NCBI RefSeq assembly: GCF_001194135.2
Contig: NC_068994.1
Coordinates: 47,173,354 to 47,213,150 of the forward strand
Reading direction: 5' to 3'
From: Octopus bimaculoides
Taxonomy: Eukaryota
Length of the DNA stretch: 39,797 nucleotides
The translations under genes were made by a program, and so were the position numbers. Within the stretch, counting starts at the first letter, position 1, and each line of letters begins with the position of its first letter. Below, piece after piece: positions 656 through 35,294 of this stretch. The notes under the pieces were generated by a model. It was given only the letters and a program-made list of their open reading frames with translations, made no database searches and had not been told where the DNA came from.

Positions 656-1426
656 GTAAGTACAAGACGCTACACTTTCAAGGATTTTTTTTTTGTAGCT
701 GTTTCTTTTCTACATTTATTTTCAGGCAACTCAGTTTTTGTTTTCAGAGAACTTTCTATTGATTTGTAAATATTCCATTCCAGGCAAGAATTTTAATTAA
801 ATTCTAAGACGACTGCTATTTCTAAATTACACATGAAAGTATCAGTATAAGGTTTTTATAGCTGGGTTTCTAAAAGCATGATAAAGAGTTCAAATTCTCA
901 CTACAACCACTGTGTTGTTCTTTGGCCAGACATATAGTTGTTTTTGTGTTTGCCTGACTGATATAAAACTGGTTCTACTTGCTAGCTCACAGGTGAGTGG
1001 TTAGCAATAGAGACGTTCCCTTCAACTGTAAAAACTGTTGTTCCAAACACATCATTCCATCTACTCTAGAATAGAATAATGGAACAAGTATGTTGGTATA
1101 ATGGATTATTGGATATATAACTAACAGTTATGAAATGAAGGATATTTTGCACAATTTTTAAATACCGAATTATCCCTGATTGAACAAAGGTGTTCCAGTC
1201 ATGACCATCCTGTCCTATTGTGCATTTCATTACCTAAAACTACATTATGTCCTTCCTTTTTCAAACAGTAGGGTGTGATCTGAGGAAGACTTGGCTGCTA
1301 TTTTGAGAAGGGTAAGCTATTATGTAGATTCCTTTCCAGTGGCTCAGTGGATGTAAAATAGGTTTTTTTGGGGGGTTTTTTATTTTTTTATTTTTAAATG
1401 TCTAAAATATAAGGTGACTCATCATC

Positions 1427-1639
1427 CTTTCTACTAAAGACACGAGACCTAAAATTTTGGGGACGGGGCTTAGTCAATTACATCTACCCCAGTATTTCAC
1501 TGGCACTTAATTTATCGACCCCGAAAGGACGAAAGGCAAAGTTGACCTCAGTAGAACTTGAACTCAGAATGTAGTGACAGGCAAAATACTACTAAGCATT
1601 TCGTCCGGTGTGCTAATGATTCTGCCAGCTCACCGCCTT
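1427..1639 (-). mobile_element. tRNA-derived SINE, family A (GGCGGTGAGCTGGCAGAA head)
   Basis: Alignable to copies at 25.4-27.0 kb and 35295-35472; shared GCCTTTCRTCCTTTCGGGGTCGATAAA domain. Confidence 0.85.
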
Positions 1640-1944
1640 AACCATCATGATAATAAGGCAAAATTTATTAAGACTGTTAACCTTACCTTCTCAGATCATA
1701 ACTTCTCGTGGTAATGGTCGTGGCGGCAGTGGTGGTGGTGAATAAGAAGTGTCAAAAACTTCATTTCTCTTCACCCCTCCCCCCATCCCAAGGTCTACTT
1801 ACGGAGAAGCGATACAAAAAGATGACAGTGATGAATCAACAGAAGACATGTAAATGCCAAGTTAATTTAAAGAGGTTTATCGCTTTTACATTTCAAACTA
1901 TCTATAAACATATAGCACAAATACATAGTGACGATCCTGTCTAT

Positions 1945-1952
1945 TTTCTCTT

Positions 1953-1985
<33 letters not shown>

Positions 1986-2290
1986 TTTGTACCATCCCCC
2001 TCTCTGTCTTTTTTCTTGTACCACCCCTCTTTGCTGCCTTTTCTCCCTCTCTCTCCTTTTTTGTACCACCCTCTCTCACTTTGCCTACTTTCTCCTTTTT
2101 GTACCACCTTTCTCTCTATCTCTCTTTTTGCCTCCTTTCTCCTCTCTCCTCTTTTGTACCACCCTCTCTCACTTTGCCTACTTTCTCCTTTTTGTACCAC
2201 CTTTCTCTCTCTCTCTTTTCCTCCTTTCTCCTCTCTCCTCTTTTGTACCACCCTCTCTCTCTCTCCCCCTCTCTCCTTTAGTTGGATTCT
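1945..2290. repeat. CT-rich higher-order repeat, 93-bp period with TTTTGTACCACC subunits
   Basis: TTGTACCACCCTCTCTCACTTTGCC recurs at 2061 and 2154. Confidence 0.9.
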
Positions 2291-3458
2291 CTTTCACTTT
2301 ATTTTAACTTATTTACCTCTTGTCATTTCTTTGTTTTCCATTCTGTTTCCCAGAACTGTGGAATCACTGCATATCAGTACTTTATTCATCTGTCCTTTCA
2401 TGGGGCCCTCAAAACTCCTCCGTGTGTGTGTGGTGGGTTTAAGTAACAAGTGATTAAGATCCAGCTTGGATGCAAGTAATATTTCTCACAACTGCTATTG
2501 CTCTTAAGAGTATTTTGTATCATCTTTGGGTATCTACTAATACCTTGGAAGATTGGGCTATTGAGCATTAAATAACCTCATCATTATCATTACATTCATC
2601 ACCAATTCCAACTAGAACTAACCTCTTGAAAATTAAATGTTTTTGCCTTGGGGCACCTACTTAAGGCTAGGTGGACTGGGCTGTAGGACAGTTAAACAAC
2701 ATGGTTATGGACACAAGTTGATGATTCTGGGCCTGAATATTTGATGATTTTATACAATACTCAAATATGTTCTACATTAGATTATTTGCTTTTTTTTAAA
2801 AATATTTATTCGCATTATATTTGCCTTTTTCAGCAATATACTTCTTTTCTCACACAAGTTATGTTTTTCTTCAACACATGCCATACTTTCCTTTTCCACA
2901 CACACACACACACACTAAACATGCCTTCTTCAATGCACCTCATACAAGCTTTCAGTGATAATCTAACTACAGTAATCTATTATGGCATATGGATTATACT
3001 TTTTCAGGCTTTTCTCCTCATCTTTACAATTTGATATATCCTTTGATATTTACACCCTACATTTCAATCAGTTTGTTCTCCAGTCATAAGTGTCTTATCC
3101 CTAGATAGATGGTATTGTGCAAGACTTGAACTAAAAACATTTACAGTGGAACCATGGTTTAGAAATTTAATTCATTCCTGAAGGCCATTTGTCATCTGAA
3201 ATGTTTAGAAATCAAAACAAATTTTCCCATAGGAAATTCAAGAGAAACCACAGCAAATTCAAGCAGGAATGTGTACTGAGTGGAAACTAGACTACAACTG
3301 ATACTCTCTTGCTGGTATGCCCACTTACCACCAACTATTGTGTATTCATTACTCAAGACACTGTTCGTCACAACAAGACATTTTATTCAAAAAATCGTTT
3401 GTAAACCAAGGTTCCACTATATTTCTGAAGACAAGATTTATCATCTGAAAGCTTAAAA

Positions 3459-3773
3459 GTAAAAGACCCCCTTTGGTCATGAATGACCATAGGATTGCAT
3501 CCAGAAAGTTCCCCTTCAAGATACAAGTCGAGGCAAGGTTGCTTATGGAAGACCAGCAGTCACCCATGCATACCAGCCACTGATGTTATCCAAGGCAAAG
3601 GCAAAGGCTGATACAGCTTGGCACCAGTGACATCGCAACTCATTTCTACAGCTGAGTGAACTGGAGCAACATGAAATAATGTGTCTTGCTCAAGAACACA
3701 ACACTCCTCCCAGTCTGGGTATCAAACTCACTACCTCATGATTGTAAGCCCAACATCCTAACTACTGAGCTAC
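3459..3773 (-). mobile_element. CORE-like tRNA SINE, family C
   Basis: Reverse complement aligns along its full length with 22690-23017 and 32052-32300. Confidence 0.85.
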
Positions 3774-4048
3774 TAATAACAGCTCATTTCTCAGATATTT
3801 ACACATTTAACTCTGCAAGTTTTCATTTCCCTTTGAAAAAGACCAATGGCAGTCTCTCTTTTTTTCTCTCTCTCTCTCTCTCCAAAATATACCATCTTCT
3901 GCATTTCTCTGTTTAAAAAAAAAAAATATTTTTGAGATGTATAGAGACAAGCAACAGAGAATTACCTGCAAGTTCTGCACTTACTCGTATACGTGAATGT
4001 TTGTCTCAAAAATAAACCCGCTGTGATTTTTATTTCTGTTTTTGTTAG

Positions 4049-4123
4049 GATGCCAGTAACAGTATGCCTCGGTCCTTAAATGTACCAGACAATAAAAAAG
4101 ATGTAAGCTCAACTAGGGAAGTT
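4049..4123 (+). CDS. SPPL2: Candidate SPPL2 cassette exon (DASNSMPRSLNVPDNKKDVSSTREV); alternative donor gives 4049-4102
   Basis: T-rich tract + TAG acceptor; two GTAAG donors (4103, 4124) giving 54 or 75 nt, both open in phase 0. No homology support. Confidence 0.45.
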
Positions 4124-5179
4124 GTAAGTATTTCTTGCACCCAGTAACCTTGGTTCTTGTGTTCCTTCATGTAGGTTGCATTAATTTAATAGGATTTTTC
4201 ACACATACAACCCTGCACAGCTTCTTTCAAATTTCTTTTCTCTAACATTCTTATCTAATGTGGTGCATTGGCAGAACCATTTGGGCATCAAACAAAAACA
4301 CCTGCAGTATTTAGTTATGACACTGTTCTGAATTCAAAGCCTGACTAGATCAACTTTCATCCTTCTGCAGTTGAGAAAAGTAAGTACCAGGCACATAATG
4401 AGGTTGATTTTGATATTCTTATAAGGCATTCTGGATGGAAATGGAATTGTAACACTGTGGAACAGAATAAAAAATTTTTTTTTTTTTTTTTGGTCTTTGG
4501 TCAGTAAGTGTTATTTCCAATTTGCTTCTATCTAGAAATCAAAGAAAATGACTACCATTCCCTTCAAACTTTGCTTTTGTGACCTGGATATCAATGTTTT
4601 GAAACTGACCTATTTCCCATTACATTTCAGACAGATTCAGGGCTGAGTTGCTGAAGCAAAAATATTGCTATAGCAAATATTCGGCTCAATACCACAGATT
4701 TGCTTATCAGTTGCTTGATCTTAATCACTTGAGCATGTCCTTTAGTGGCTGACAATATGTGCATCTTTGATCATGAGCAGTAGTAGTGGGGGAGCATCAT
4801 AGTCATGTGTTGAGAGGAATTATTGGGGGTTTGAATAAATGTAACAAAAGCAAAGTTTGAAGGAAATATTAGCCATATTTCATACTTTCTAGGGGTAAAG
4901 GAATAAGAAATAATAGTTGCTACCTAAGGATAAAAATCATGTTACACAGTGTAATATAAACCTCCCTCCAATTTTGTCCCCTAATACACAAAACTGTAAA
5001 TCATCCTTCTAGGATTGATAAGATAAAATTCCAGTCAAGTATTGGGGTCAATTTCATCAACTAACCCCTCCATCACCTGAATCCTTCGATAGAAATCCAC
5101 TATATATTTCTCCTTTCCCAGCTAGAGCAGCCATGTATCTCCTTTACACTCCCTTTATCATACTTTGGCTCCCTCAACA

Positions 5180-5750
5180 CCTGGCACAAAGCCACTTGCC
5201 TCAACACGGCACCCCAACTCAGTTGAAGGTTCTTGTCTTGCAAGTTACTTGGTGGCATCCTTAGTACTGGTGCCACAAAAAAAAAAAGTGCACCTAGTAC
5301 ACTCTGTAATGTGATTGGCATTAGAATGGGCATCCAGCCATAGAAAACATGGCACATTGGAGTTCAGCACAGTTCTCTAGTTTGCTAGATCCTGTTGAAC
5401 CAGCCAGCCTATGACCCACATCAGTATCCAGTCCTTGTTGCAGCATGTTGGCTGATGTGCCTCAGTGATCCTGTGTATCATGTCATTGGAGCACCAGCTC
5501 CTGGTAGAGCCTACTGGACGGGTCAAAAGTTAAGGGTATCCAACTGTAAAAACCATACTAAAACAGACCTCGCCAGTGCTAGTTCCATGTAAAATGCACT
5601 CGGTCCATTCTGTAAGGTGGTTGGTGTTAGGAAGGCCATAGAAGCCATGTCAAAACAGGCAGTGAAACCTGGTGCAGTCTTCTGGCTTTGCCAACTCCTC
5701 TCAAACTGTCCAACCCATGCCGGCATGGAAAATGGACGTTAAATGATGTA
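5180..5750 (+). mobile_element. Two adjacent diverged family B-like copies
   Basis: Two GGGCATCCAGC / GTTAGGAAGG-type domains; ends AAAATGGACGTTAAATGATG. Confidence 0.6.
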
Positions 5751-7149
5751 CCCTTTTACTCTTTCATTAGTTTCAATCATTAAATTGTAGCCATGCTAGG
5801 ATACCATCTTCAAGGGTTTCAGTTGTTAATATCGACCCCTTCTTTCATTAACTTATTTTATTAACCTCACATGGGTGAACAGCAAAGTTGACCATTAACC
5901 TAAGTTTAAAGAACCATAACTAAATCCTATCAGGTATTTTTGTTTAATGTTTTAACCAGTTCTGCCATCCTTTCGCCATAGATAGATAGTTGATAGACTA
6001 ATATAGACGAGTGTATAAATGAAAGTGCACTCAACATGTGATGAAGAGTTTTAATATTGGTATTAGCTTAACTTGAAAATGCATTACTTGAAATTTCACT
6101 GATGTAAAATACCCCTGATGTTTTGTAAGCTCACTTCTGAAGTAACGCATTCTGTCTGAATGATCAAGAATTAGAGGTGGTGGTGGTGGTGGGGGGGGGT
6201 CACATCTATGAAAAATAAAGTAATGCTTCTCAGAGTGTAGCTGATTCCCATCCTAGGTCACCTGAGGAAATGTACGTGTTTTAGGCTATTTAGTTCCCAG
6301 TACACTTACACTCCTACCTCCCCTTCAAACTACCCATTTCTGGCCTTTCTGCTGTCATTGCTCCTTTTCCTAATCCCTTCTTTGGTCTACAAACCTTAGG
6401 TTACTGAGTACTCCAGTTTTGGTGCCACAAGAAAACATCTCACTTTATTCTGTAAAGTGGTTGGTGATAGAAAGGGCATCCAACTGTGGAATTTATAGCC
6501 AAGTGGACTGGAGCAACATGAAATGAAGTGTTTTGCTCAAAAACATAATGTACAGCTGATCATGAGTGCAACTACTTAACCACTAGGCCATACACACTCA
6601 CATTATATAATGTGTCCCCTTTTTGCATGCTGGCATGCATTGGACAGAGCTTCTTCAAGCAGTATTCTGCGGAAGAACGCCCTTCCTGACACCAACATTT
6701 GTCAGTTTAAGTACTTTGATTCAAGAGTTTTCATGGGTTAAGTCACTGAAACACACACACCCACAGACATATGCATGCATACAGCCCTCTGTACAGTTTC
6801 TGCCTATTAAATTTTTCCTACAAGTCATAGGTAGAAGTCACTTGCTCAAGGTGCCTTGCATTGGGATTGTACCTAAAATTACACAACTGCAAAGCAAACT
6901 TTTTAACCACACAGCCAATGTATATATTTTCTCACATACATACACACATAACAAGGCTTTGGTCAACCTGAAGCTAGATGATATGCTTGCCCAATGTTGT
7001 GCTTCGGCACCAAATTTAGGACAATGTGATTGTCAAATGAACTCCTTAATCACAGTCATACCTGTTACCCAAGAAATGAGTTGAAATTGTGTTAGTCAAC
7101 TCTACCCTACATTACTCTTACGCAAATAGTTTGTGCCAAATCCATTTCT

Positions 7150-7320
7150 GAGGTGGTGAATTGGCAGAGCTGTTAGATCATCAGACAGAATGCTTTGCAG
7201 TATTTGTTCTTATTCTATGTGCTCTGAGTTCAAATCCTGCTGAGGTCAATATTGCTTCTCAATCCTTTTGGAATTAAGAATAAGTACCAGTCCAAGGTGC
7301 AACATTGGCTGAGCTGTAAG
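7150..7320 (+). mobile_element. SINE family A, diverged
   Basis: GTGGTGAATTGGCAGAG head, GAGTTCAAATCC B-box, ATAAGTACCAG. Confidence 0.7.
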
Positions 7321-8442
7321 AACATTGGATCAACTGCCTCGTATTATTTATTCCAGCTCTTTGCATTCTGAGCTCAATCCAACCATGACCTACCAAGGTG
7401 GTAGACATAACCCATCACCCAGTTTAACACTACCACTTGACACCTTCAGCATTTTAGCAGAGTGCCCTGTCCAACACCCAGGCCAGCTTTTATCTGGTTT
7501 GAAGTTACTTTTGTCCTTTCCTCCCTCCAGTCTCAGTGACCATATAATGGGGCCTAGGTACTGACGTCTCCCACTGGCTAAAAGAAAAAAAAAATTGTTA
7601 AATAAAATCCTAATTTATTTTTGCATGTGCTTTTTGTTTCGTTAACAATTAATGTGGAACAATGTCTGTGATATTTAACCACAAAGTGATAGTTCTTTTG
7701 TTGTTGTTGTTGTTCTTTTTTTAATACTTCTAGAGCAAAATAGACTGTAGTGCCTTTTACGAACTGAGCTAACAAAATAGGAGCCACCCTTTATTTCATG
7801 GTTAGTTGACTGATTGATTACTTGATAAGAAAGGACGTTGTGAATTCCAGCTTCATCACTTTCCATTGTCGTTAGTTGTATTGTCTGCAAAGAAAACATC
7901 AAGGAACATTGTTTGACTTGTCTCATTCTGTATGGAGGACAAATAGACTGCATTCTTAGAATGTGGTTGTGTTGTTAGGAGTTAAAAAGGCCGTTGTAAA
8001 TTCAAACTTTACTACCTCAACAGTTACTGAGTTAGAAGCTTTTAAGGTACTTTATACCGGTTTCTTTATGATTTTCTCTCTCTCTCTCTCTCTCACATAC
8101 ACACATAAACAATCACAGGTAGAATAGATTTATCATCTTCATCATTTTACATCCACTTTCCCTGGTGTCATAAATTGGATAGATTATCACAGTCCAAATC
8201 ATATCTCATTTAGAGAACCACATCTCACTCCTACAAGAAATGAAAATATGCAGCGGTTTTTGTGGGTTTTTTCATTTTCTTTTTTTTTTTAATGAAAATA
8301 AGGGTTCTTGTGAACATGCAGATTCATCACAATTTTTTTTTAAAGATATACATACTTGGTTTTTTTTTTTGTTTGTTTTTTTTTTTTCTGTTACAATGTA
8401 CACACTATTGGGCTTGCTTTGTTTGCTTAAATCCACTGAAAG

Positions 8443-8451
8443 CTTTGCTGG
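8443..8451 (+). CDS. SPPL2: Candidate 9-nt microexon (LCW in phase 0)
   Basis: 95-nt AG-free T-rich zone, two TGC motifs, AAG acceptor, TGG|GTAAAC donor (moderate). Confidence 0.3.
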
Positions 8452-8631
8452 GTAAACATGCCCTCATTTGAATGACTGCTGCTGGGTGATCAGACTCTTA
8501 GCTGAACACACTATTTTGTGAATGTTTTGTTCGGTGAAGGTTTCTTTTGATGAACATGTTCGGTTAAAGTGAACATTTTGTTATCCAGTGAACAAACTCC
8601 TTTAAGTAAACAAAGCTTTGGATAAGAGATA

Positions 8632-8790
8632 NNNNNNNNNNNNNNNNNNNNNNNNNNNNNNNNNNNNNNNNNNNNNNNNNNNNNNNNNNNNNNNNNNNNN
8701 NNNNNNNNNNNNNNNNNNNNNNNNNNNNNNNNNNNNNNNNNNNNNNNNNNNNNNNNNNNNNNNNNNNNNNNNNNNNNNNNNNNNNNNNNN
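8632..8790. other. Assembly gap (others: 12281-12346, 15827-15836, 29320-29329, 33158-33416)
   Basis: Runs of N; three fall in the long SPPL2 intron and could hide exons. Confidence 1.
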
Positions 8791-8902
8791 CAGAAGAAAC
8801 AGTGTGACTCCCATAATCTTTACAAACCTTCCTAAGTCTGGTGATTAATGCTTAATTTTTTTTTATATAAACTGAGAAATCTGGATGTCAATACATGTGT
8901 GT

Positions 8903-9250
8903 GTGCAGGCATTGCTGTGAGGTTTTGGGTTCAGTCCCACTGCTTGGCACCTTCACTGTCTTTGTGTCTTCTACTATAACCTACCAAAACCTTATAAATG
9001 GATTTGGTAGATAGAAACTGAAAGGTTATTGTGTGTGTGTGTGTGTGTGTAGGTGCAGGCATGGCACTATAGTTAAGAAGCTAGCGTCTCAAGCATGTGC
9101 TCTTGGTTTCAGTCCCACTGTGTGGCACCTTGGGCGAGTGTCTTCTACTATAGCCCCAGAAACTGAAAGCAGCCCATCGTATATGTATGTTTATTATATA
9201 TGTGTGTGCATCTTTTGTCTTGACATCATGTACATGAGCATCACATGATG
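8903..9250 (+). mobile_element. Two tandem family D SINEs joined by (GT)n
   Basis: Both carry GGTTCAGTCCCACTG..GGCACCTT..GTGTCTTCTACTATA. Confidence 0.8.
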
Positions 9251-9609
9251 TTCGTTTACTGTTTTTCCCTGATAAAATATTACCTTACTTGGAAACGGGC
9301 GAGGGTTGGCAACAGGAAAGGTATCCAGCTATAGAACAATATCTGCATCAGCAAATTCTGCTGGCTCATGCAATCCTGGAAAAAGGGACATTAAAATGAT
9401 GATGGAGTGTGTGTGTGTGTGTGGGAGCATGCAGCTTGCTTAGTTTTGCAAAGGTGGCAGTGATGTTGTCATTTCTCCTATCAACAAATCACCCATTTAC
9501 TTTGTGCCTTCGAAGCCAGGTGAAATAAGAAATCCTTTCTTCGAAAAACAAGTATAGGTTAAAAACAGGAAGAGCATCCAGCTGTAAATCAATGCCGCAG
9601 TAACTGACT

Positions 9610-9807
9610 CAGTGGTTCTCAATCTTTTTTTTCGTACCTATGGACCCCTTAGATTTCTGTTTTACTCAGGTGGACACCCCGCCCCATAGCCATCTGATGT
9701 TTTAAAAAATCCTATTTTATAATTAACTATTATTAGGTATTTGCTTAAAATGATTGAAATATTTTGTGTATTGTAGAAGTATAACCAACCCCAGTTGAAA
9801 ACCACTG
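9610..9807. mobile_element. hAT-type MITE
   Basis: CAGTGGTTCTCAA...TTGAAAACCACTG termini; interior similar to 15872-16146; 8-bp flanks match 5/8. Confidence 0.7.
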
Positions 9808-9917
9808 ATCTAACCCATGTAAGCATATAACAAAAAAAAAAAACAACATAATCAAAAACTTACATGTATATAACTGAAAAAATTTGGAGTCGAATATAAC
9901 TAATGTGTGTATATATA

Positions 9918-10243
9918 TGTAGTGAAACTACCTATCGCCATTAGATACAAAACTGCTATCGTGTGGTACACGGAACAGATCTCAAAGAGAAACTGAACCG
10001 AGACAAATTTGCCGCTGAATTAATGCTACTTTTATAGTTGATAATAGGCTCACCAGACAACAGAAAAATACTCTATCACGTGACCTTATTAGGGGCTGTG
10101 ATTGGTCAGTTTGCGTTCTGGCGGGAACGGTTCGAAGAAGTTGCCGATTCGAATAATGATCAGTCACGTGATGACAAGGTTGATGTTTTCCGTTACGCCC
10201 GTGCTTGTTTATATTTAAATGAGAAGAATGGCGATAGGTAGTT

Positions 10244-10251
<8 letters not shown>
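9918..10251. mobile_element. MITE with 23-bp perfect TIRs, inserted in a (TA)n tract
   Basis: TAGTGAAACTACCTATCGCCATT (9920-9942) is the exact reverse complement of 10227-10249; CpG-rich interior. Confidence 0.88.
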
Positions 10252-10272
<21 letters not shown>

Positions 10273-10278
<6 letters not shown>

Positions 10279-10410
10279 TCGTTTAACGTCTGTCTTCCAG
10301 GCTAGCATGGGTGGAACAGTGCCACAAGAGCTGGCCAGGCCGAAGCCTGCACCAGACTTCTGTGTCTGTTTTGGCAGGATTTTTACAGCTGGATGCCCTT
10401 CCTAACACCA
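10273..10410 (-). mobile_element. Family B 3' fragment abutting (TA)n
   Basis: CATCGTTTAACGTC...CAGCTGGATGCCCTTCCTAAC. Confidence 0.75.
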
Positions 10411-10633
10411 ATTTATTTATTTATATCTGCTTATATAGTGACTGAAAATTGTCTGCATTTACTAGCGTCTGAATAATTTCCTTTTAATGGGTTATGTCTT
10501 TATAATCCTTCATTTGCATATCTTCATATTTGAATAACCAGGATTATTCTGTTAATGATTGCACTGAGCAATAATTTTTTCTTTCTTTTTTTCTTCTTTC
10601 TAATCCTAACAATGCTTTCCATTTAACAACAAG

Positions 10634-10639
10634 GAACAG
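10634..10639 (+). CDS. SPPL2: Candidate 6-nt microexon GAACAG (EQ)
   Basis: 63-nt AG-free zone, pyrimidine tract, CTAAT/CTAAC branch-like motifs, TGC at -21, perfect CAG|GTAAGT donor. Inclusion yields EQ-LP, like the EKLP of vertebrate SPPL2. Confidence 0.6.
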
Positions 10640-10958
10640 GTAAGTGATATTAACTCCTCTTTGTCTTTCTATTCACTGCAAAATTATAAAAGTTTCTGTC
10701 CTGCACTTTGGTATGTCTTCAAGTGTTTAAAAATTAAATTATAGCAACAATAACATTAAGTGGCTCTAGTTCTGTTGCTTTCTGTTGATCTGCTGATATT
10801 TTGGCATGCAGTGAAGGCTACTTTTATCGGTGTCATCGTTCAGAGCTGAAGATTTCTTTTGTCCATTAAACAAAACAAATATTTGTCTCAGCGTTTGAGG
10901 GAATCATCAGTTTCTGCTTTTTTCTGTCTTTTTTCTGCTTTTATCCCATTCAAACCAG

Positions 10959-10985
10959 CTGAAACCTACTACCATACTGTTTCAG
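10959..10985 (+). CDS. SPPL2: Candidate 27-nt microexon (LKPTTILFQ in phase 0)
   Basis: 46-nt AG-free pyrimidine tract with two TGC, CAG acceptor, CAG|GTAATT donor, frame-preserving. Confidence 0.4.
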
Positions 10986-12495
10986 GTAATTGGTCTATTG
11001 CTCTTAAACGAAAAAGAGGCAAAATAAAAAAAATCACAATCTCACAGTTAGTTATGCCATTCCCACACACATCTTTATTATTTTCATCTTCTCACTAGCA
11101 TGACTGCAGCCTCATGGCTGAAGCACACACAAGAATAAAAATAACATGCCTGGCACTCAGGGTGTTTGTTATGAATGCTTTCTGTGTCATTATCTCTTCT
11201 CTAATTCAGCTTTTAATTTTTCTAATCTGCTGGCTTAACATATATAACATTATATAGACAAACAGTTACTATATTGTTTTTTTTTGTTTTTTTAAATAAA
11301 ACCTATCCTGCAGCTGCATTGAGTTCAATCAAGCTGATTGGTTAAAAATATGATCCTCACTAGGTGAACCTTGAAAGTTATATATTTTTATCTAAAATAA
11401 ATAAGTGATTATGATTAATGATGGGGGAATATATTACAATAAACACTATGGCAACACTGGTTGACTTGCAGCATGCTAAAAGTTATTGTTTCCTACTTTA
11501 TCAATTCAATTCAGGACCCTTTTGCAAATAACATGTCATATGTCTATATTGTACTATTAATTAAACCCCTGTTTTTAAACAGACGTCCAGCATCTCACCT
11601 TTGAATGTCTTGTAATTCTGAACTTTTTATCACAACTAGCTTTGGTAGAAGCTGGTTCTATTATTATCAAAATTATCTGGAATTTCATTGATTTAAAAAT
11701 GTTTTTATTTTTGAAATGTTTATGTATTCTTCTCCTGCCTCTGCAGATTTATTTCTTCATTTGCTAAACAGTAACTATTTTACAGCAGTTCATATATGTA
11801 TGTGTATAGACGTATATGTGTTATTTTTTTTAAATGGTCTTGTTTTATTTAACTAAATCAATTACTTTTGTATGTCTATTTTAATAATATTACTGTTTTT
11901 TTTCTAGGCTAATCCAACAATTTTTCTGTATTTTAAATCCCTGCAACTTTTTTCCTTCTTTGTGAGAGGTCTAACATGTTTGTCAGCTTCACAGTACTTC
12001 ATACATATGTGTTTGTGCATATAAATGGAAGGAAAAGTACTCAGTACATAGGAGTTTCTTTATAGGTATAGCTGAATCTGTGTGCCAGTGAGTGTCTGAG
12101 GGACCTTATTAAAACAAAACCTGACAAGTCAACAGCGAGATGTTAAAACAAGCACAACATTTCATCTTGCTTTCTCTTTCCATCAAACAAAATCGGTCTG
12201 ACTCTTCACTTGAACATTATAGTTTTTATCAAATTCAACATGTTGCACCTATAATGAAGTTTATATATATATATATATATNNNNNNNNNNNNNNNNNNNN
12301 NNNNNNNNNNNNNNNNNNNNNNNNNNNNNNNNNNNNNNNNNNNNNNATATATTTGGTCAATCAAAATCTATCCCTCATTTCTCAGTAATGGTTCAATCTT
12401 CAAGTTTCCTTCTGTTTTTCTTCCCCCGACCCATTTTCTCCTCAAATAAATGTTTTGGAAATTAATTTAACACTTTTTCTTAGATATCTATTTAA

Positions 12496-12838
12496 CCCTT
12501 TCAGTCATAGATGAAAAAGTACAACTATTTTAAAATTTTATTTTTTATTTATATTAAAATACAAGGTAAATTAACACATATTGAGTAAACTTCCAAAGAA
12601 TTCAATATGCTTAATTTTTGACATGGATAAATAATTTTGCTAACACTAGGTAAAAATAATACTAATTTACTTACAACCTGCAGCCATCCTCTATGACTTG
12701 TATGCAAACACTGAGTCAGAATCACGTGGTCTTGGTTATATATGTGTTTTAGAGGTGTCCAATGAATTGGTAACTGTGACTCAATTATAATTTACACTGA
12801 AAAATTGTCCAATACATTGGACAAAGTGACTGAAAGGG
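12496..12838. mobile_element. piggyBac-type MITE
   Basis: TTAA-CCCTTTCAGTCA...TGACTGAAAGGG-TTAA: 12-bp perfect TIR with TTAA target duplication. Confidence 0.8.
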
Positions 12839-13844
12839 TTAATGATTTTTAGTGACCTTGTTTTGTATAGTAATTTTTATCATGGAACTATAAAGTAATA
12901 TCTGTCTCTCAAGATTGAATACCTGCCTTTTTGAGTCCAATTCTTCACTATGGTTAATGATGTATTTTATCTTCCTGATCAAATCTGTTTCTATGATCCA
13001 CCGTTTTTTTTTTGTTTTGATTTTTTAGTTTTGTAGTTTTATTACATCATGCAAGAAAAAACAACAGTACCTTGGTCTTTCTCTGATATGCCTTACCTTC
13101 TTAAATTGCTGAAATCAGTGTTATTGGTGTGTTTTAACTTGGACTTGAGAATTGGGACAGGAGTGATGCAGGACTTGAGGAAGAATGATCAGATAATGTA
13201 TATAGTGGAACACAATAGGCTGGAGGGAGAGAAAGTAAGACACTATTTGCTAGTTCAGAGGAGTTAAAATTGTTGTAGTAGTGGTAACAGAGACAGAAGG
13301 AGGGGCCACAGCATATTGCTGAGTTAATGATTGCAGCATGCTAATGAATACATGTTTGCTAGGCAGTTTTGGGATTGCGCCTTTATTCATGTCAGGGATC
13401 GATCTGTTGCATCCCAGATATATGCAATTTCCAATTGTTGGGAATTGCACTTGTCCCTTGTCAGCACTTTATCAACACCTTTTTTTTATTTATTTTTTTT
13501 TATTATTATTTTTTTTTTTTTATTTTTTTTTTTTATATATTTGTCTAGATCTGATGGTGAAGTCTATTTTCTGAAACGGTTTTAGTTAAGATTGGGGTTA
13601 CTAACTGCATCAACTTTGAAAAGAAAATTTTCAAAATAAGTTTGGAATTTGACATAATGATTTATATTGTGTTGTTGCTGGAATCCCCTGGTTATGTTGA
13701 TGTTGCTATCACTTTTTTCCCTTTTTTTTAAGTCTGGTATTTATTCTATCAGTCTCTTTTGCCAAACCACTAAATTACAGGGATGTAAACAAACCAAAAC
13801 TTCTTGTCAAGTGGTGCTAGGACACACACACACATACACAATGG

Positions 13845-14005
13845 GCTTCCACACAGTTTCTATCTACCAAAATTCACTCACAAGGCACTGGTCATCCTGG
13901 GAGCTATAGTAGAAGACGCTTACCCAAGGTGCCATATAGTGGGACTGAACCCAAAACCACATGGTTGCATTAGCAAACTTCTTAACCACACAGCCATTAC
14001 CTGTG
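13845..14005 (-). mobile_element. SINE family D
   Basis: GCTATAGTAGAAGAC...GTGGGACTGAACC...AACCACACAGCCA, the reverse of family D. Confidence 0.8.
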
Positions 14006-14862
14006 CCTCTAAGAGTTTACTCCCACCCCACCTGCCAAAGAAAATGTCTAAACAGTTATATATCAGAGGTTCACCAAACAATCACAAATCTAGTGGCACA
14101 ATGCTGATCTTGGTTAAAGATCAATTGTTTTCGGATGCAAATAATGACACTTACTGGAATTAATAAGTTAGTAACAGTTTTAGGTTTGCATGAATTGAAT
14201 TGGAAATGAAAACAGGTGTTGTTGCTGTGTTAGGAGATGAAGATGAAATAAGGATGGTTGATTTAGTTAAAGCTTGTTATTTGCTATGGAGCTCTTCCTC
14301 ATTACTCTTCCATGAAGGCTTGATCTTTTTTTTTAATCATCATAATCCTCATTATTATTAGTCTCTTTGTTTGTCCAGTAAGCTCTTAGACCACTACTAT
14401 GGACTGCCAAAGATTCTCACTCCATCTTTCTGCTGCTTCATTCCCTTCTGAGAAGAGATTGTCCATATTGATCTATTTGTTTGGTGCTATCTTTTTCCTG
14501 TCACTGTCTTCATCTTCATCTCCTTGCTTGCTTAGTTGTTTTCAGAAAACTATGTAGTCCCTGTCTCTCTTTGTCTCTTATACTACTATTACAACTGATC
14601 TTCTTCCTCTGTATACCATTTCTATCCAGATCCAACTTCTCTCATTACTCTCAACACCCTCTGCCTCTCCCACTAACTTTGTATTGTATTATTGTGTTGT
14701 ACACATTGCGACTCCTCATTACTCCTCTTCCTCCTGAGTTGATGGTGGGAGGTACAAAGAATATGGGACCTGCCCCTCTTCCTTAGGATGAAATAATTAA
14801 GCGAAAACAAAAGATAGCCTCTCTTACCTGTTAATGCAATGTTTCTAAAACGCAGAAACATA

Positions 14863-15025
14863 ATCATCATCATCATTGTTTAACGTCTGCTTTCCATGCT
14901 AGCATGGGTTGGACGATTTGACTGAGGACTGGTGAAACCGGATGGCAACACCAGCCTCCAATCTGATTTGGCAGAGTTTCTACAGCTGGATGCCCTTCCT
15001 AATGCCAACCACTCAGAGAGTATAG
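14863..15025 (-). mobile_element. Young family B retroposon 3' part, (GAT)n tail
   Basis: 3 mismatches over about 95 bp against the reverse complement of 16667-16765. Confidence 0.88.
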
Positions 15026-15304
15026 CCAACCACTCATCTGTTCAAAACACATTGAGGCTATGATTAGACCTTATTAATTAGCTTTGTAGTTGTTCTTTAT
15101 TTCCTAACAGTTGGAGAGGCTGATAAAAAACTAATCTCCTTAAAACCACTTCTCAGTTATGGATTAATCAGTAACCTGAGGATCTCTTATGTAGATGATG
15201 GAGGTGGAGTGCATCAATTCTAAGAAGCCCCTACCACATCAGTATAATAACTCTTTCCATAACTTCAACACATCAGCCTTTCTGTGGATATTTGACTAAG
15301 TAGT

Positions 15305-15630
15305 TCATTTCCTAACCACAAGTTCAGTTCCTCTGCTTGACACCTTAAGGAAGTGTCTTCTTCTGTAGACCTGGTCCGGCCAAAGCTTTGTGAATAGATT
15401 TGGTAGATGAAATCTGAAAAGAGTCTGTGTGTCCATGTGATGGCTGTAACCATTTCTAGGCTTTTGTAGAAACGTGTCCAACCAAGGGGAATTAGGTGCG
15501 GAAACCTTTCTTGGAAATAGGTGAGGGTTGTCAACCGGAAGAGCATCCAGCTTGAGGAAATCTGCCTCAATGAATTCCATTTGATACATGCGAGCATGGA
15601 AAAGGGGATATTAAAACAATAATGGTAGTG
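15305..15630. mobile_element. Family D (-) fragment joined to a family B-related (+) fragment
   Basis: AAGTGTCTTCTTCTGTAG/CCAAAGCTTTGTGA-type segment then GGAAGAGCATCCAGC...GCATGGAAAAGG tail; strand of each part tentative. Confidence 0.5.
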
Positions 15631-15871
15631 ATGATGGCCTCCATCGAATGTTCTCACTGCATTTTGTTATATAACATGCATGTTCAGAGAAAGATATGTA
15701 TCTGTTTCACACTCTTCGGAATACTATTGCAAGCATCTCGGCCCAAAACCAAAAGCATAGAACATCGCAAACACCTTGGTCCAAATTCAAAAGCTTTGAG
15801 GAAGTCAGTCAGTCAAGATGGGGGGGNNNNNNNNNNAAGAAGAAAATGACAAAACTGAAGATAATCTGAAC

Positions 15872-16146
15872 TAGGGGTTCTCAACCATTTTTTAATTCAT
15901 GGACCCCTTTGATTACTATTTTATTCTAGTGGACCCCCATAGCCATTCAATGTTTAAAAAGTAGTCTTATAGAAACTTTTTCCAAAATTCCAATTTTGTT
16001 TCTCACACATTAACTTGTGTAGGTTGAACTATGTAAAATGTTAGAAACAAAAAACAAACCTAGCTGTTTCTTGCAATACATATCAATACATATATCTAAA
16101 GTGAAATTTTGATATATGTTGCATGGACTCCAATTGAGAACTACTG
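15872..16146. mobile_element. hAT-type MITE, same family as 9610-9807
   Basis: TAGGGGTTCTCAACC...TTGAGAACTACTG termini; 8-bp flanks ATCTGAAC/ATCTAAAT match 6/8; shared ATGGACCCC and CCCCATAGCCAT. Confidence 0.75.
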
Positions 16147-16627
16147 ATCTAAATAAAACATGCAAAAGAAAAAAATAAAATGAAGTGTTCTTTACTACTT
16201 CTTATTTGTCTTGCGTCAACCCCAGTTTTGATTTTGTTTTGATTTTTGTTCTGTATTGGTAATGTGGTGAGGGAGTTGGAATTCATTATATTTTTCTTTA
16301 TTCCAGATAACAAACTTTTGGATATATTTCGTTTTCCCTTCTATTTAATTTCAATTTTTACTTTACAACTTAAATGTCATGCAATTTTGTCAATACACAG
16401 ATCAAGTCACTAGAGAGTATACATACACATATGTATACACACATATATTGCATACTTTTATTATTAATTTACTGGTTTTCATCACTGGGCTGTGGCCACG
16501 TTGGTGGATACCACCTTGTATAGTTTATTTACATCAATCCGAGTACTAATCTTTTATTCACCGGAAATTATTTTATCAGTCCCAGAACAATATAAGAGAA
16601 AGTGAACCTGAGTGAGATTTGAACTTG

Positions 16628-16666
<39 letters not shown>

Positions 16667-16671
<5 letters not shown>

Positions 16672-16765
16672 GCCTGGTGTTGCCATCCGGTTTCACCAGT
16701 CCTCAGTCAAATCGTCCAACCCATGCTAGCATGGAAAGCGGACGTTAAACGATGATGATGATGAT
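16667..16765 (+). mobile_element. Young family B retroposon, 5'-truncated, after (TA)n
   Basis: ...CCATGCTAGCATGGAAAGCGGACGTTAAAC(GAT)n; near-identical to the 14863 and 21474 copies. Confidence 0.9.
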
Positions 16766-16802
16766 CAGTGAAGCTAATCCTTTTTGTTTTTCTTATTTTC
16801 AG

Positions 16803-16902
16803 CTCCCTCTAGTTTTCCGAGTGCCTCCTTTGTTTCCGTCTCATCCCTCAGTGTGTTTTGTACAGGAGTCGCTTCTGGGCTTTGGCGACGTCATATTACC
16901 AG
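16803..16902 (+). CDS. SPPL2: SPPL2 exon with catalytic GxGD motif (LPLVFRVP...SLLGFGDVILPG)
   Basis: CTAAT branch-like motif (16774), pyrimidine tract, CAG acceptor, CAG|GTATGG donor; 100 nt phase 0/1; LGFGD motif. Confidence 0.97.
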
Positions 16903-17823: not shown

Positions 17824-17901
17824 GTGTACTGGTTGTCTACAGTCATATTTTTGATATCTACGTCCGAGCAAAGAAACTCTATCTCATTATTTCTATTTGT
17901 G
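17824..17901 (+). CDS. SPPL2: SPPL2 exon (GVLVVYSHIFDIYVRAKKLYLIISIC)
   Basis: CAG acceptor, GTG|GTAAGC donor, 78 nt phase 1/1; aligns to the GLLIAYCRRFD...YYVSS region of SPPL2A. Confidence 0.93.
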
Positions 17902-18864: not shown

Positions 18865-19022
18865 GTTATTTACTTGGATTGCTTCTTGCCTTTGTTGCTT
18901 TAACTCTAATGCAAGCTGGCCAGCCAGCGTTGTTGTACCTTGTACCTACTGTGCTCTTGTCAGCTATCATTCCATCTTGTTGCCGAGGAGAATTTAGAGA
19001 AATGTGGACTGGAGATTTTTTG
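18865..19022 (+). CDS. SPPL2: SPPL2 exon with PAL motif (GYLLGLLLAFVALTLMQAGQPALLYLVP...EMWTGDFL)
   Basis: TAG acceptor, TTG|GTCAGT donor, 158 nt phase 1/0; GQPALLYLVP signature of the SPP/SPPL family. Confidence 0.97.
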
Positions 19023-20852: not shown

Positions 20853-21180
20853 GTGATACCCGTGCCAGTGGCATGTAAAAAGCACCATCCAAACGTGGCC
20901 GATGCCAGCGCCACCTTGACTGGCTTCCATGCCGGTGGCATGTAAAAAGCACCAACCGATCGTGGCCGTTGCCGTTGCCAGACTCTCCTGGCCCGTGCCG
21001 GTGGCATGTAAAAAGCACCCACTATACTCACGGAGTGGTTGGTGTTAGGAAGGGCATCTAGCTATAGAAACACTGCCAAATCAGACTGGAGCCTGGTGCC
21101 GCCTCCTGGCTTCCCAGACCCCAATAGAACCGTCCAACTCATGTTAGCATGGAAAACGGATGTTAAACGATGATGATGAT
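20853..21180 (+). mobile_element. Longer family B SINE with three internal 25-bp repeats
   Basis: (G/A)TGCC(A/G)GTGGCATGTAAAAAGCACC at 20862, 20929 and 20995; GTTAGGAAGGGCATC domain; (GAT)n tail. Confidence 0.85.
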
Positions 21181-21473: not shown

Positions 21474-21625
21474 TCATCATCATCATCATCATCATCGTTT
21501 AACGTCCGCTTTCCATGCTAGCATGGGTTGGACGATTTGATTGAGGACTGGTGAAACCGGATGGCAACACCAGGCTCCAATCTAATTTGGCAGAGTTTCT
21601 ACAGCTGGATGCCCTTCCTAACGCC
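21474..21625 (-). mobile_element. Young family B retroposon
   Basis: 1 mismatch over about 99 bp against the reverse complement of 16667-16765. Confidence 0.9.
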
Positions 21626-22689
21626 AATTAGCAACAGAGGCAGTATTAATACTGATAGGTAACATTTACCTCCACTGAAATGTAGATGGTCTGTTAGAAC
21701 ACACTATACTGCAGTAGATACCATGAGAGAAATGCTCATATTGGTTTTTGGTACAAAATTCACTCCTGTTTACATCACTGGTGGAGATATAAATCCCTGC
21801 TGCCTCCAACATTGAGATAAACAAGAGGTGCATTTTTGCACCAAAAGCCAATATGAGAGTTTCTCTCTTGGTATCTACCACAGTATAGTTTGTTCCACAT
21901 TTCAATGGGGATAAATATTACCTTTCTCTTGTCTCCCATCCCCTTGAAAATTATTTGTATAAGAGAATTGAAGTGGCTTCAACCAGTTTTGAAATTATAT
22001 CCTGGCTTTTGGCTTGTTCTCCAGATTCCCTCTTGCTCAGCAGTGTTCATCGGTTGTTGTTATTGTGTAGCCCTAACTCCGCATTGATCAAGTAGTCCTG
22101 TGGCACGCAGGTCGTCAATCAACAACAAGGGAATCATCCACCACAGAGCTGCTGCTGGTGGTGTTTATGTGTAACCTTTAGTCAACTCTGATTGAGATTT
22201 ACAACTAAGTAGCTGTTGTAAAGCAGTCTTTTACCACTTCTGTATCTATCTTTTGATGACAGTCGTTTCTCTGATAGATATTGTTATATTCTGAAGTTGT
22301 CGACAGGGTGGTTCTATCTGGCATTGTACAACCCCACCACCACCACCACCATCATACAGTGTTATTATCTTCAAAAGGTTGGATTGTTATAGCATTCACT
22401 CAGTATCACAGTATGATTACTATATCAACACAGATACGACTATCAACACAGTCTACATGTACTCTCGACCTTCTACTGTCGACCAGCTACTGGTCTATTT
22501 ATAATGGCTGGTTACTACCACTTTTTACCAGGAGGGGTGTACAGTTTCACTATACAACAGTAGCATCAAGAATCCTTTGTTCCAGAAATACCATAGTGCA
22601 AATTCCATCATGCAGGAGGCATACTATACTCCCTCCACTTTCCAATTTATTTTTGTACACCTGTTGTTGTTTAACCCCAAATAGTGAAG

Positions 22690-23838: not shown

Positions 23839-23976
23839 AATTTTCTAAAAGCCTCACCTCCAGCTGATGATAGATCTCTCTCCCAGGAGACCCTCCCAGA
23901 TGACGTTGAAACACCACCCATTTCTTCAAAGACTGACCAGTCTAAAAGAAATGAAAACGACCACCTACTAAATTAG
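23839..23976 (+). CDS. SPPL2: SPPL2 terminal coding exon, cytosolic tail ending ENDHLLN*
   Basis: Pyrimidine tract + CAG acceptor, phase 0 compatible, 45 codons then TAG. The acidic/Pro/Ser-rich tail is plausible but has no homology support. Confidence 0.75.
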   Translation, partial: NFLKASPPADDRSLSQETLPDDVETPPISSKTDQSKRNENDHLLN

Positions 23977-24256: not shown

Positions 24257-25224
24257 ATATATATAATATATGACAGGAATTGTAACAAATGTTCCATTCC
24301 ATCTTAGCAAAGTTTGACTGCCAAAGTAAAAGATAAACCAACTGAGGAGTAGGCTCAGAACGGCAGAGTTGATATCATATCAGGCTACAGAATCTCAGGT
24401 ATTAAGTTAACCTTTTTGCTAAATATTTTAGGCAGGAGGCCCTTTATTCTGCCTTGTTTGAGTTCTGTTGCTTCTTGGAAGAAGAGGTACCAGAATCACG
24501 AGAATGTTACCTTTATTATAAACTAGCATTCTATCCAGGAACAGATTTGACTCTCATTTGCCGAGTGCCATGAGACTAAAGCTGAGCACTGGCTGAACCT
24601 GCGAGACCCTTACATGTTCTACTGGTATCCATAGCTCATTGCATTGTGTCTTGACATATTAGCTTCACATATCTCACTCCTCTCCAAGATATCCCTTATG
24701 ATAAGGTAAGCTTTTAGGTGGTCGTTAAGTGGAGCTACTGTGAGGGAAATATCTGAGTGTGTCTGAGGGGCTCAATACAAGACATCAGAGTTCTCTATCT
24801 CATGACAACTAAATTTATTACCATCTACAAACTCTCTTCAGATTCTTTTACTACTGTTGTCAGTGCTGCCGTTTGACCATTTTCCTCGGATTCCAGATTT
24901 TATCCTTATCTCCGTGTTAAAATTCTACTAATAAATTATTACTTTCTATGGTACCTTTTACTAGCTCAGTGGACACCAGATCATTTGCGACTTGACCACA
25001 GACACAACACAATGCCTGTTGTGCAGGTTATAAACCATCAACTGTTCAGATAACAGTTTGACATCATATCAGCTGAAACCAGCAAAATAACTTACCTGTA
25101 TTTGGTAAAATTTCTTTGCATTCTCTCTGAATCCTGTTTTGTTTAACGTTCCCTTTTCCTCCTCTAAGGGTTGATAAAATAATCATTATTCATTTCGGCT
25201 TCATTAAATATACTATGCCTCTCT

Positions 25225-28939: not shown

Positions 28940-29559
28940 ATTTCCTGGGGAATGATAAGAGCAATGATGCATATATACAGCTGGTCGACTTTCTTAACAT
29001 AACTAACAAATCTTTAACAAGAAACTCACACAATGCAAAAAACGATACACCGCCACAGCAGTAACTGTATTCAACTGAATAGACGTCAGTGATTGGTTGA
29101 AATTATCGAAATAAGACAACTTTTAACATGAAATAACTTCGAATACAAAATTTATCTGTTCTATAACACAAAATATACAAGTATACGAAGTTTGAAAGTG
29201 TTTCGGTACCAAGAACACTACATAAATGAAAAATGTTGCCCGTCAAACCAAAAAGATCCGTAGTATGTATTCACAGCCAACACAAAACTCAGCCCCCACA
29301 CACACACACATACGCGCGCNNNNNNNNNNTATAAATTTGCATGTGCACTGACTCCAAATACTGCACATATATCCACATACATGCAAAAATATCCTCTCTA
29401 TGTAGACCCCATAGCAGTGCATGGACACCTGTTTTTTTTTTTTTTGTTTTTTTTTCGTTTTAAACACTTATGAGTTGAAAGGAGAGAGAAATACCTACAA
29501 ATATTTTTCGTGGTTTCTTTTTGCTACATTGATAGACTATAAATAAAGTTAACTGCCCA

Positions 29560-29691
29560 TTCAGTGGAACAGAGTAAAAACCAAAGGTAGAAGCCGGAAA
29601 AATCGTGAGTGGGATGAGCTGCTATTTGTTTTACGGTCGTTTCTGAAATGTTCGCTAGCTTTACACGTTTGCATTGTGTACAAATGTAAAC
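29560..29691 (+). promoter_or_regulatory. Probable HDDC3 proximal promoter / 5'UTR
   Basis: CpG-retaining segment directly upstream of the ATG; ETS-like CCGGAA at 29594-29599; start context AAACATGG. TSS not determinable. Confidence 0.45.
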
Positions 29692-29803
29692 ATGGAAGAT
29701 ATGTTAAGTACAGTGATCGAATGTGCCAACTTCGCGGCTATTAAACACAAAAACCAAAAACGTAAAGACGTGGAAGGAACACCGTACATAAACCATCCAA
29801 TAG
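29692..29803 (+). CDS. HDDC3: HDDC3/MESH1 exon 1 (MEDMLSTVIECANFAAIKHKNQKRKDVEGTPYINHPI)
   Basis: Matches human AADFAARKHRQQRRKDPEGTPYINHPIG; TAG|GTATTC donor, phase 1. Confidence 0.96.
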
Positions 29804-33041: not shown

Positions 33042-34163
33042 GTAATCACTTGATTTTTTGTTTGTTTATTTTAATATATTTTCCAGAACTTGTGTGTGTG
33101 TGTGTGTATATATGTATATCATATATATATATATATATATATATATGATAATGAATTNNNNNNNNNNNNNNNNNNNNNNNNNNNNNNNNNNNNNNNNNNN
33201 NNNNNNNNNNNNNNNNNNNNNNNNNNNNNNNNNNNNNNNNNNNNNNNNNNNNNNNNNNNNNNNNNNNNNNNNNNNNNNNNNNNNNNNNNNNNNNNNNNNN
33301 NNNNNNNNNNNNNNNNNNNNNNNNNNNNNNNNNNNNNNNNNNNNNNNNNNNNNNNNNNNNNNNNNNNNNNNNNNNNNNNNNNNNNNNNNNNNNNNNNNNN
33401 NNNNNNNNNNNNNNNNGTATATAAGGTAGAAAGTATGGTGAGTGATTACATGTGGTTGAATATATACAGAAAAAAAATAAGATTAAAAAACACAGATTTG
33501 TTTTACAAGCCTAAAAAATATATTAGAATCATAATTGCAAAAGTATTATACAATATTGTACAAAATAAGAATTTTTTCTTCCAACATAATAACCTGTTTC
33601 ACTATCGCTTTTCAAATTAAGAGTTTTGGATGAATTTCCTAATTAGACATTCAGAAATTCATCCAAAACTCAAAATTTGAAAAGTGATAGTGAACCAGTT
33701 ATTATGTTGGAAGAAAAAAAATCTTATTTTGTACAATATTGTATAATACTTTTGCTATTAGATTCTAATATATTCTTTAGGCTTGTAAAACAAATCTGTG
33801 TCTTTTCATCTTATTTCTTTCCGTATATATGCATATATTTATACACACACACACAAATATATATCAAAGACCACATATATACATATTTGTTTTGCAAGAT
33901 TTTTGATGTGAAATCGTGTGTTGAAAATGGCTGATAGTTAGCAAGGTGAGACACACATAAGAAAGAAGAAAGCAAAGGACCACTGATGAGGTCACAGAAG
34001 TGTGACGAAAGAACTCTGGCCGAAATAGGATTAATGTAATATAATGTAATATAAAGCTGAAGCAAATTAACATAAATATACAGTGCGTGTGTTTTTATTG
34101 GCTAAACTGGCAATATGACCATCCCCAAGTACAACAACCACATATATATTTCTTTCTTTGCAG

Positions 34164-34880: not shown

Positions 34881-35294
34881 CATGCTTCCCCACCATGTCC
34901 CATGTCTTCCACATGTTCCCTCCACAGATTGAGATTGGCACTTCTTTAGGCAGCTGTTCTCATCCATATGCACCTCATAACCATATCAGTGTAGTTGCCT
35001 CTTTTGCACACATCTCTTATACTCTTATACTCAATTTTTCTCTCAAGACACTTACAGCCTGTTTCGCACATGCACGCACACACGCACACTACTGCTTGTT
35101 ATTATGGGTTGAGATATATATAAATGATTTAACAAGAGTGACAGTGAGTTTGAAGTTTCAGCCTGCTTGTCTTCATTGAACAGCCCAATGATATCATCAT
35201 CATCATCATCATCATCATTTAATGTCCATGTTCAATGCCAGCATGTGTGGGATGGTACCACAAGAGTTGACCAGGCCAAAGCCTGCACCAGAGT

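Follow-up and report, generated by a model that had tools for sequence, protein, structure and literature searches.

Does the long intron that precedes the active-site exon of an octopus SPPL2A-like gene contain a 6-nt exon, and is that exon spliced into some transcripts and left out of others? The window, that is, the whole stretch of DNA that was analyzed, comprises 39,797 nt of Octopus bimaculoides contig NC_068994.1 (positions 47,173,354 to 47,213,150 of the forward strand). The original prediction, which was made by reading the nucleotide sequence, proposed that GAACAG is a neural-type microexon that inserts Glu-Gln ahead of a conserved Leu-Pro. We evaluated the proposal against public protein models, background frequencies of splice signals in the window, homologous proteins and published microexon architectures.

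The window belongs to the SPPL2A-like gene of O. bimaculoides, which RefSeq names signal peptide peptidase-like 2A; in assembly GCA_001194135.2 it is found on CM046614.1, at approximately 47.17 Mb. When the spliced C-terminal peptide was used as the query, exhaustive HMMER searching matched XP_052828559.1 at 98% identity in two stretches, and tblastn of that protein reproduced the window exons exactly. Spliced forms score 124-132 bits against Pfam PF04258 (Peptidase A22B); exon B contributes GFGD and exon D QPALLY. The exon layout is as follows (slashes mark exon borders).

596-655, + strand: exon A; encodes NGESVMVDVATGKSGHNSES; ends in phase 0; donor TCA/gtaagt
4049-4123, + strand: 75-nt exon; encodes DASNSMPRSLNVPDNKKDVSSTREV; acceptor ttgttag/GAT; donor GTT/gtaagt
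10634-10639, + strand: candidate microexon GAACAG; Glu-Gln; phase 0 to phase 0; residues 432-433 of XP_014780374.1
16803-16902, + strand: exon B, the downstream partner of the microexon; encodes LPLVFRVPPLFPSHPSVCFVQESLLGFGDVILPG; opens with the conserved L-P and carries the GxGD catalytic motif
17824-17901, + strand: exon C (tblastn of XP_052828559.1)
18865-19022, + strand: exon D, with QPALLY (tblastn of XP_052828559.1)
23839-23976, + strand: last exon (tblastn of XP_052828559.1)

The YD catalytic motif of TM6 is missing from all O. bimaculoides models, in which ...NLRIPSLK is joined straight to NGESVMV.... Exactly that intron holds an assembly gap of 1,195 Ns (L004 32200-33394) that ends at the first base of the window, and the absence of the TM6/YD exon probably stems from the assembly, not from a dead protease. 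Within the window itself, five runs of Ns represent assembly gaps (8632-8790, 12281-12346, 15827-15836, 29320-29329 and 33158-33416). Three of the five fall within the host intron of the microexon, where there may be further small exons. A second gene lies downstream on the same strand, with ORF pieces at approximately 29659-29745 and 36700-37017 (+), including ...KLVKLADKLYNLRDL..., that resemble HDDC3/MESH1, although they reach just 23.3 bits against Pfam HD_4, which is below the cut-off. No Rfam family was found at gathering score anywhere in the window.

The microexon is housed in a 12.7-kb intron between the 75-nt exon (4049-4123) and exon B (16803-16902). Each of the three public O. bimaculoides models across the junction includes the 75-nt exon, whose last residues are Glu-Val; no counterpart was found in SPPL2 of Haliotis, Owenia or human, the non-cephalopod orthologues compared. 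The original prediction overlooked this exon. Because it took 656-16802 as a single intron, it named the wrong upstream partner and gave the EQ-free junction as SES/LPLV, whereas the modelled partner yields ...STREV/EQ/LPLV. The inclusion and skipping k-mers that it proposed for RNA-seq searches were built on exon A and are unsuitable, since the modelled upstream partner is the 75-nt exon; they would probably match nothing. The predicted junctions are given below.

75-nt exon/microexon/exon B (inclusion): AGGGAAGTTGAACAGCTCCCTCTA
75-nt exon/exon B (skipping): AGGGAAGTTCTCCCTCTA
exon A/microexon/exon B (inclusion): TCAGAATCAGAACAGCTCCCTCTA
exon A/exon B: TCAGAATCACTCCCTCTA
exon A/75-nt exon: TCAGAATCAGATGCCAGT

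Public protein models bear directly on the exon. The older RefSeq protein XP_014780374.1 (590 aa) shares a 90% cluster with the current XP_052828559.1 (588 aa), and the sole difference between them is an EQ inserted at residue 432, directly before LPLVFRVP (...DVSSTREV-EQ-LPLVFRVPPL...). Splice-site shifts of 3 or 6 nt at the neighbouring exons cannot yield E-Q, because the adjoining hexamers read GTAAGT and TTTCAG. The pattern AG/GARCAR/GT, of which approximately 0.4 decamers are expected by chance, occurs in the window only once, at 10632-41. With a single suitable site and no route through a shifted splice site, the predicted Glu-Gln is therefore the EQ of the independent model XP_014780374.1. 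The proposed frame-preserving Glu-Gln exon is thus upheld: AG/GAACAG/GT (10632-10641) delimits 6 nt, a multiple of three, free of stop codons and flanked by canonical AG and GT. Among the models, support for inclusion comes from one automated (Gnomon) model, XP_014780374.1. The EQ is missing from the current RefSeq model XP_052828559.1 and from UniProt A0A0L8GJR5, and this absence from two models could mean that the exon is truly skipped or that, as is known, 6-nt exons are hard to place. The claim that annotation had missed the exon accordingly applies to the current RefSeq and UniProt models but not to the earlier RefSeq model.

The splice signals around the microexon are as follows.

10567-68, + strand: previous AG, the upstream border of the AG-free zone
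10569-10631, + strand: AG-exclusion zone of 63 nt upstream of the microexon 3' splice site
10575-10601, + strand: uninterrupted pyrimidine run of 27 nt, TTTTTTCTTTCTTTTTTTCTTCTTTCT, ending 31 nt upstream of the AG
10600-04 and 10606-10, + strand: CTAAT and CTAAC, CUAAY branch-point-like, with branch A residues 24-30 nt from the AG
10613-15, + strand: TGC (UGC), separated from the AG by 16 nt, at the place of the SRRM3/4-responsive element
10632-33, + strand: 3' splice-site AG, weak (AAG/G, with A at -3), the last 10 nt being purine-rich
10640-45, + strand: 5' splice site GTAAGT, which with the exonic CAG forms the consensus 9-mer CAGGTAAGT (CAG/GTAAGT)
10804-08, + strand: GCATG, which lies 165 nt past the donor within GGCATGC and is not a full UGCAUG

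All of the features that the original prediction listed (AG-free zone, pyrimidine tract, CTAAT/CTAAC, TGC, GAACAG and GCATG) were found where it had placed them. Between the previous AG and the pyrimidine run stands caataa. The run and CTAAT overlap by the CT at 10600-01, followed downstream by AATC and then CTAAC, and the stretch between the TGC (10613-15) and the 3' splice-site AG reads tttccatttaacaaca. Pyrimidine content at -22 to -3 of the 3' splice site is only 60%. The tract is U-rich and holds several UCU, without UCUC, CUCU or CUC. The microexon architecture holds for the strong 5' splice site, AG-exclusion zone, displaced pyrimidine tract, CUAAY and UGC; of a CU-rich component, UCU is seen but CUC/UCUC is not.

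We then compared these signals with their background in the window. Every GT was scored as a donor with a simple consensus matrix (PWM), and every AG was scored as an acceptor by its AG-free distance and the best 20-nt pyrimidine content. The + strand contains 72 acceptor-like sites and two donors of at least 12 bits. If the two kinds of site were independent, approximately 0.10 pairs with an acceptor and a donor of >=12 bits 3-30 nt apart would be expected; one was seen, and it is the microexon. Of the 57 AG-N6-GT sites between exon A and exon B (656-16802), the microexon comes first. With the simple PWM, its donor reaches 13.1 bits, the top score of any exon donor in the window, compared with 7.3 bits for the next-best AG-N6-GT site and 4.9-9.8 bits for the five annotated exon donors. 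The consensus 9-mer, which the original prediction called a perfect donor, was found at two places in the window when both strands are counted, where 0.27 would be expected. Pyrimidine runs of at least 25 nt number ten on the + strand of the window, including 10575-10601, and at background, two or more CTAAY are present in 0.8% of 63-nt windows. The TGC carries little weight, as a TGC is found per 40 nt with a background p of 0.43. The Rbfox-like GCATG is present at 10804 as described, but lies in GGCATGC and is uninformative, with a background p of 0.20 for a 200-nt stretch. Overall, the combination of splice signals at the microexon exceeds chance; these signals by themselves leave the exon plausible and unproven.

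A 27-nt in-frame candidate exon, CTGAAACCTACTACCATACTGTTTCAG (LKPTTILFQ), lies at 10959-10985 (+), 320 nt downstream of the microexon, with 46 nt free of AG, a tract of 95% pyrimidine and a donor, CAG/gtaatt, of 8.8 bits. It was rejected as a second exon: it is consistent with chance, given approximately 1.6 pairs expected at its threshold, and it is in no public model. Further consensus donors occur at 990-998 (+; CAGGTGAGT), inside the intron that follows exon A and approximately 340 nt from its start, and at 25090-25098 (-), where the second copy of the 9-mer lies. By the criteria used, the 30 nt upstream of each contain no acceptor-like site; the two may represent decoys, unannotated exons or sites of recursive splicing. 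A SINE-like repeat of approximately 140 nt, with copies 72-80% identical and often adjoining (TA)n microsatellites, is present at 10275-10413, 5621-5748 (-), 14872-15008, 21039-21174 (-), 21491-21629 and 35211-35292. The microexon region was rejected as a repeat, as it is not repeated within the window and the nearby SINE-like copy ends at 10413, approximately 160 nt before the pyrimidine tract.

The protein context shows what the two residues would contribute. The original prediction saw in the inserted EQ an echo of the EKLP of human SPPL2A/B, and the comparison with homologues agrees: E-x-[LIMV]-P is kept, and as E-x-[LIMV]-P-Φ-Φ was found in 90 of the 108 SPPL2 homologues having both sequence anchors, with x most often Q (25) and next K (20). 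The microexon EQ falls just N-terminal to the L-P of this family-wide motif, which on alignment to human SPPL2A runs into the active-site β-hairpin. From VAT to LP, the linker measures nine residues in Haliotis (...VATGGKSHSGEQLPMVF), Owenia (...VATGAGGTSGEQLPMVL) and octopus exon A (GKSGHNSES), and the final Glu-Ser of exon A occupies the place of EQ before LP in Haliotis and Owenia. Exon A thus represents the ancestral linker with its own Glu-X, to which the 75-nt exon and the microexon are additions. Glu-X ends exon A (SES), the 75-nt exon (REV) and the microexon (EQ). Since all three end in this way, E-x-L-P is kept in every splice combination, and the use of several combinations would be the simplest explanation of the shared endings. 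We considered whether the microexon restores a conserved motif that had been lost, and rejected this reading: Glu-X is already provided by the ES of exon A and by the EV of the 75-nt exon, and the direct exon A-exon B junction is the nine-residue linker of Haliotis and Owenia. Profile scores against PF04258 do not separate EQ-containing from EQ-free forms among the four isoforms, and so speak no more for inclusion than for skipping:

exon A + exon B: 131.6 bits
exon A + microexon + exon B: 130.3 bits
exon A + 75-nt exon + exon B: 124.6 bits
exon A + 75-nt exon + microexon + exon B: 124.5 bits

The structure of human SPPL2A (PDB 9k92, 9k93) places these residues. In the alignment, human ...GNN, a gap of three positions and EKLPVVIRVPKL face octopus ...NSESEQLPLVFRVPPL, and octopus EQ corresponds to human E381-K382, ahead of L383-P384 (PDB 9k92). 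A cryo-EM study reports that the TM6-TM7 loop of SPPL2A carries a preformed antiparallel β-hairpin beside the active site, that deletion of either hairpin strand abolishes cleavage, that the β1 region has many β-branched residues and prolines, and that TM6a includes M369 and A373 (PMC12745688). We infer that LP(V/L)V(I/F)RVP is β1, the main text of that study giving no strand boundaries. On this alignment, the microexon would add two residues to the linker that runs from TM6a to β1, the first strand of the hairpin.

Taken together, we are highly confident that the microexon is real, and it is probably alternative. Our preferred explanation, held with moderate confidence, is that the 6 nt at 10634-10639, GAACAG, form a true cassette microexon of the O. 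bimaculoides SPPL2A gene. The exon would be too short for ordinary exon definition, and its recognition probably relies on the consensus 9-mer at the 5' splice site together with the long, displaced pyrimidine tract and CUAAY branch points in the 63-nt AG-free zone. Inclusion would convert ...STREV/LPLVF... into ...STREV-EQ-LPLVF..., replacing E-V-L-P with the family-typical E-Q-L-P. An activator of the Srrm234/eMIC type possibly acts near the UGC, which might lead to neuron-enriched inclusion. Provided that the exon is real, we regard such neural enrichment as about as likely as not, or slightly less. That any exon joinable to the LP exon ends in Glu-X argues for the use of more than one combination.

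Three other explanations have to be weighed against a cassette exon of this kind. The exon could be real and constitutive, with GAACAG in all mature transcripts and the EQ-free models XP_052828559.1 and A0A0L8GJR5 reflecting a failure to place it. Alignment-based annotation is prone to dropping 6-nt exons, a consensus 9-mer with the top exon donor score would probably be used in any transcript that contains it, and inclusion gives EQLP, the commonest motif of the family. We nevertheless consider constitutive inclusion unlikely. The skipped form comes from two independent annotation efforts, and a weak AAG 3' splice site with a displaced pyrimidine tract is typical of regulated exons. Moreover, the Glu-Val of the 75-nt exon keeps E-x-L-P when that exon is joined directly to exon B, which would be a coincidence of approximately 6-7% (a rough estimate of ours from Glu frequency) if the two were never so joined. 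It is much less probable still, and in our judgement very improbable, that GAACAG is a chance pseudo-exon and that the EQ of XP_014780374.1 is an artefact, such as a homology-guided aligner forcing the EQLP of other molluscs onto the single AG/GARCAR/GT site of the intron. Other lophotrochozoan SPPL2 proteins do read ...GEQLPMV, so that a protein-guided aligner would seek E-Q; only one site could satisfy it, with approximately 0.4 such decamers expected by chance, and the newer annotation has dropped the EQ. However, an artefact of this sort needs the one EQ-coding site also to rank first of 57 and to come with a 27-nt pyrimidine run, a 63-nt AG-free zone and two CUAAY elements, for which we estimate a joint chance of approximately 1 in 1,000. 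XP_014780374.1 also includes the 75-nt exon, which has no homologue in other species and thus points to transcript evidence at the locus.

The remaining alternative concerns regulation. The microexon may be real and alternative, yet neither neural nor eMIC-dependent, its inclusion being stochastic, broad and low-level, or governed by other factors. SPPL2 proteins are broadly expressed endo-lysosomal and plasma-membrane enzymes, not typical neuronal scaffold proteins. The UGC and GCATG occur at background frequency, and the pyrimidine tract is without UCUC. On the other hand, the architecture overall fits the published eMIC code, and microexons of very small size are mostly neural in those animals that have been studied (PMC8797185). 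We regard this possibility as somewhat unlikely, and retain the cassette microexon, with its tissue pattern graded as above, as the preferred explanation.

The older model confirms an exon that was recovered from sequence signals, and reading introns can thus find exons of this type. The current RefSeq annotation on the chromosome-level O. bimaculoides assembly is without the exon, so that proteomes and splicing catalogues derived from it miss the isoform. In this intramembrane aspartyl protease, two residues separate the microexon from the strand of the β-hairpin on which substrate docks, and if inclusion of the exon is regulated, it would provide a compact case of convergent splicing control of protease geometry. 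A wider reading, which we put forward as speculative and rather doubtful, is that the TM6a-β-hairpin linker of SPPL2 is a recurrent, independently evolved target of regulated alternative splicing. In its octopus form, the exon would be neuron-specific under the Srrm234-eMIC and would tune substrate gating or cleavage. Cephalopods would accordingly have a 75-nt cassette and a 6-nt microexon and amniotes a 54-nt cassette, with a 'Glu-X rule' regenerating E-x-L-P in each case; this extension is equally speculative.

We found no paper in a literature search that names both microexon and SPPL2 or that cites accession XP_014780374.1. Contigs of approximately 1 kb from Logan (L001-L003; another species, probably a cephalopod) align only at exon B and approximately 20 nt more, at 82% identity. 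No E-x microexon was found in the 590 nt upstream of exon B on these contigs, whose introns are not alignable, and the only protein match of the junction peptides was rejected as a spurious ORF around exon B on such contigs.

Among known systems, the closest in architecture are the SRRM3/4- or eMIC-dependent microexons, which have strong 5' splice sites, long AG-exclusion zones, strong pyrimidine and branch-point signals further from the AG, and a UCU_CUC...UGC enhancer (bioRxiv 10.1101/2024.09.17.613571; PMC8797185). CUAAY is the branch-point consensus (PMC8797185), and the 6-nt microexon of APBB1/2/3 is ancestral to bilaterians, according to a preprint. Like the vertebrate and Drosophila members of this class, of which the APBB1/2/3 exon is an example, the octopus exon falls within 3-27 nt, preserves the frame and has a very strong 5' splice site. 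It shares with them a long AG-exclusion zone, a displaced pyrimidine tract and branch point, a weak proximal 3' splice site, a UGC between the pyrimidine/branch-point region and the AG, and CUAAY, and it would add two residues to a surface loop of a conserved protein. It differs in having one UGC and no UCUC repeats, and its host is an intramembrane protease.

Closer in position are two cassettes of the SPPL2 family. In Pelodiscus sinensis SPPL2A, isoforms X1/X2 read ...GNSEK-NDGILVEGPAERSAPHEK-LPVV..., as opposed to ...GNSEK-LPVV... in X3, which defines an alternative cassette of 18 aa; both the cassette and its preceding exon end in Glu-Lys, and the same insert is present in bird, lizard, rodent and carp models. 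Neither the octopus 75-nt exon nor the microexon is clearly homologous in sequence to the Pelodiscus cassette, and an independent origin of the amniote cassette is therefore probable. Within octopus, the 75-nt exon resembles the microexon in its loop, its phase, its Glu-X end and its status as a lineage-specific addition to the nine-residue linker, and differs in its ordinary length, its ordinary proximal pyrimidine tract and its presence in all three models spanning the junction. The amniote cassette is 54 nt long compared with 6 nt for the octopus microexon, but it is likewise in frame and occupies the same intron position, directly before the L-P of LPVV(I/M)RVP, and as with the octopus exons, E-x-L-P is regenerated with or without it.
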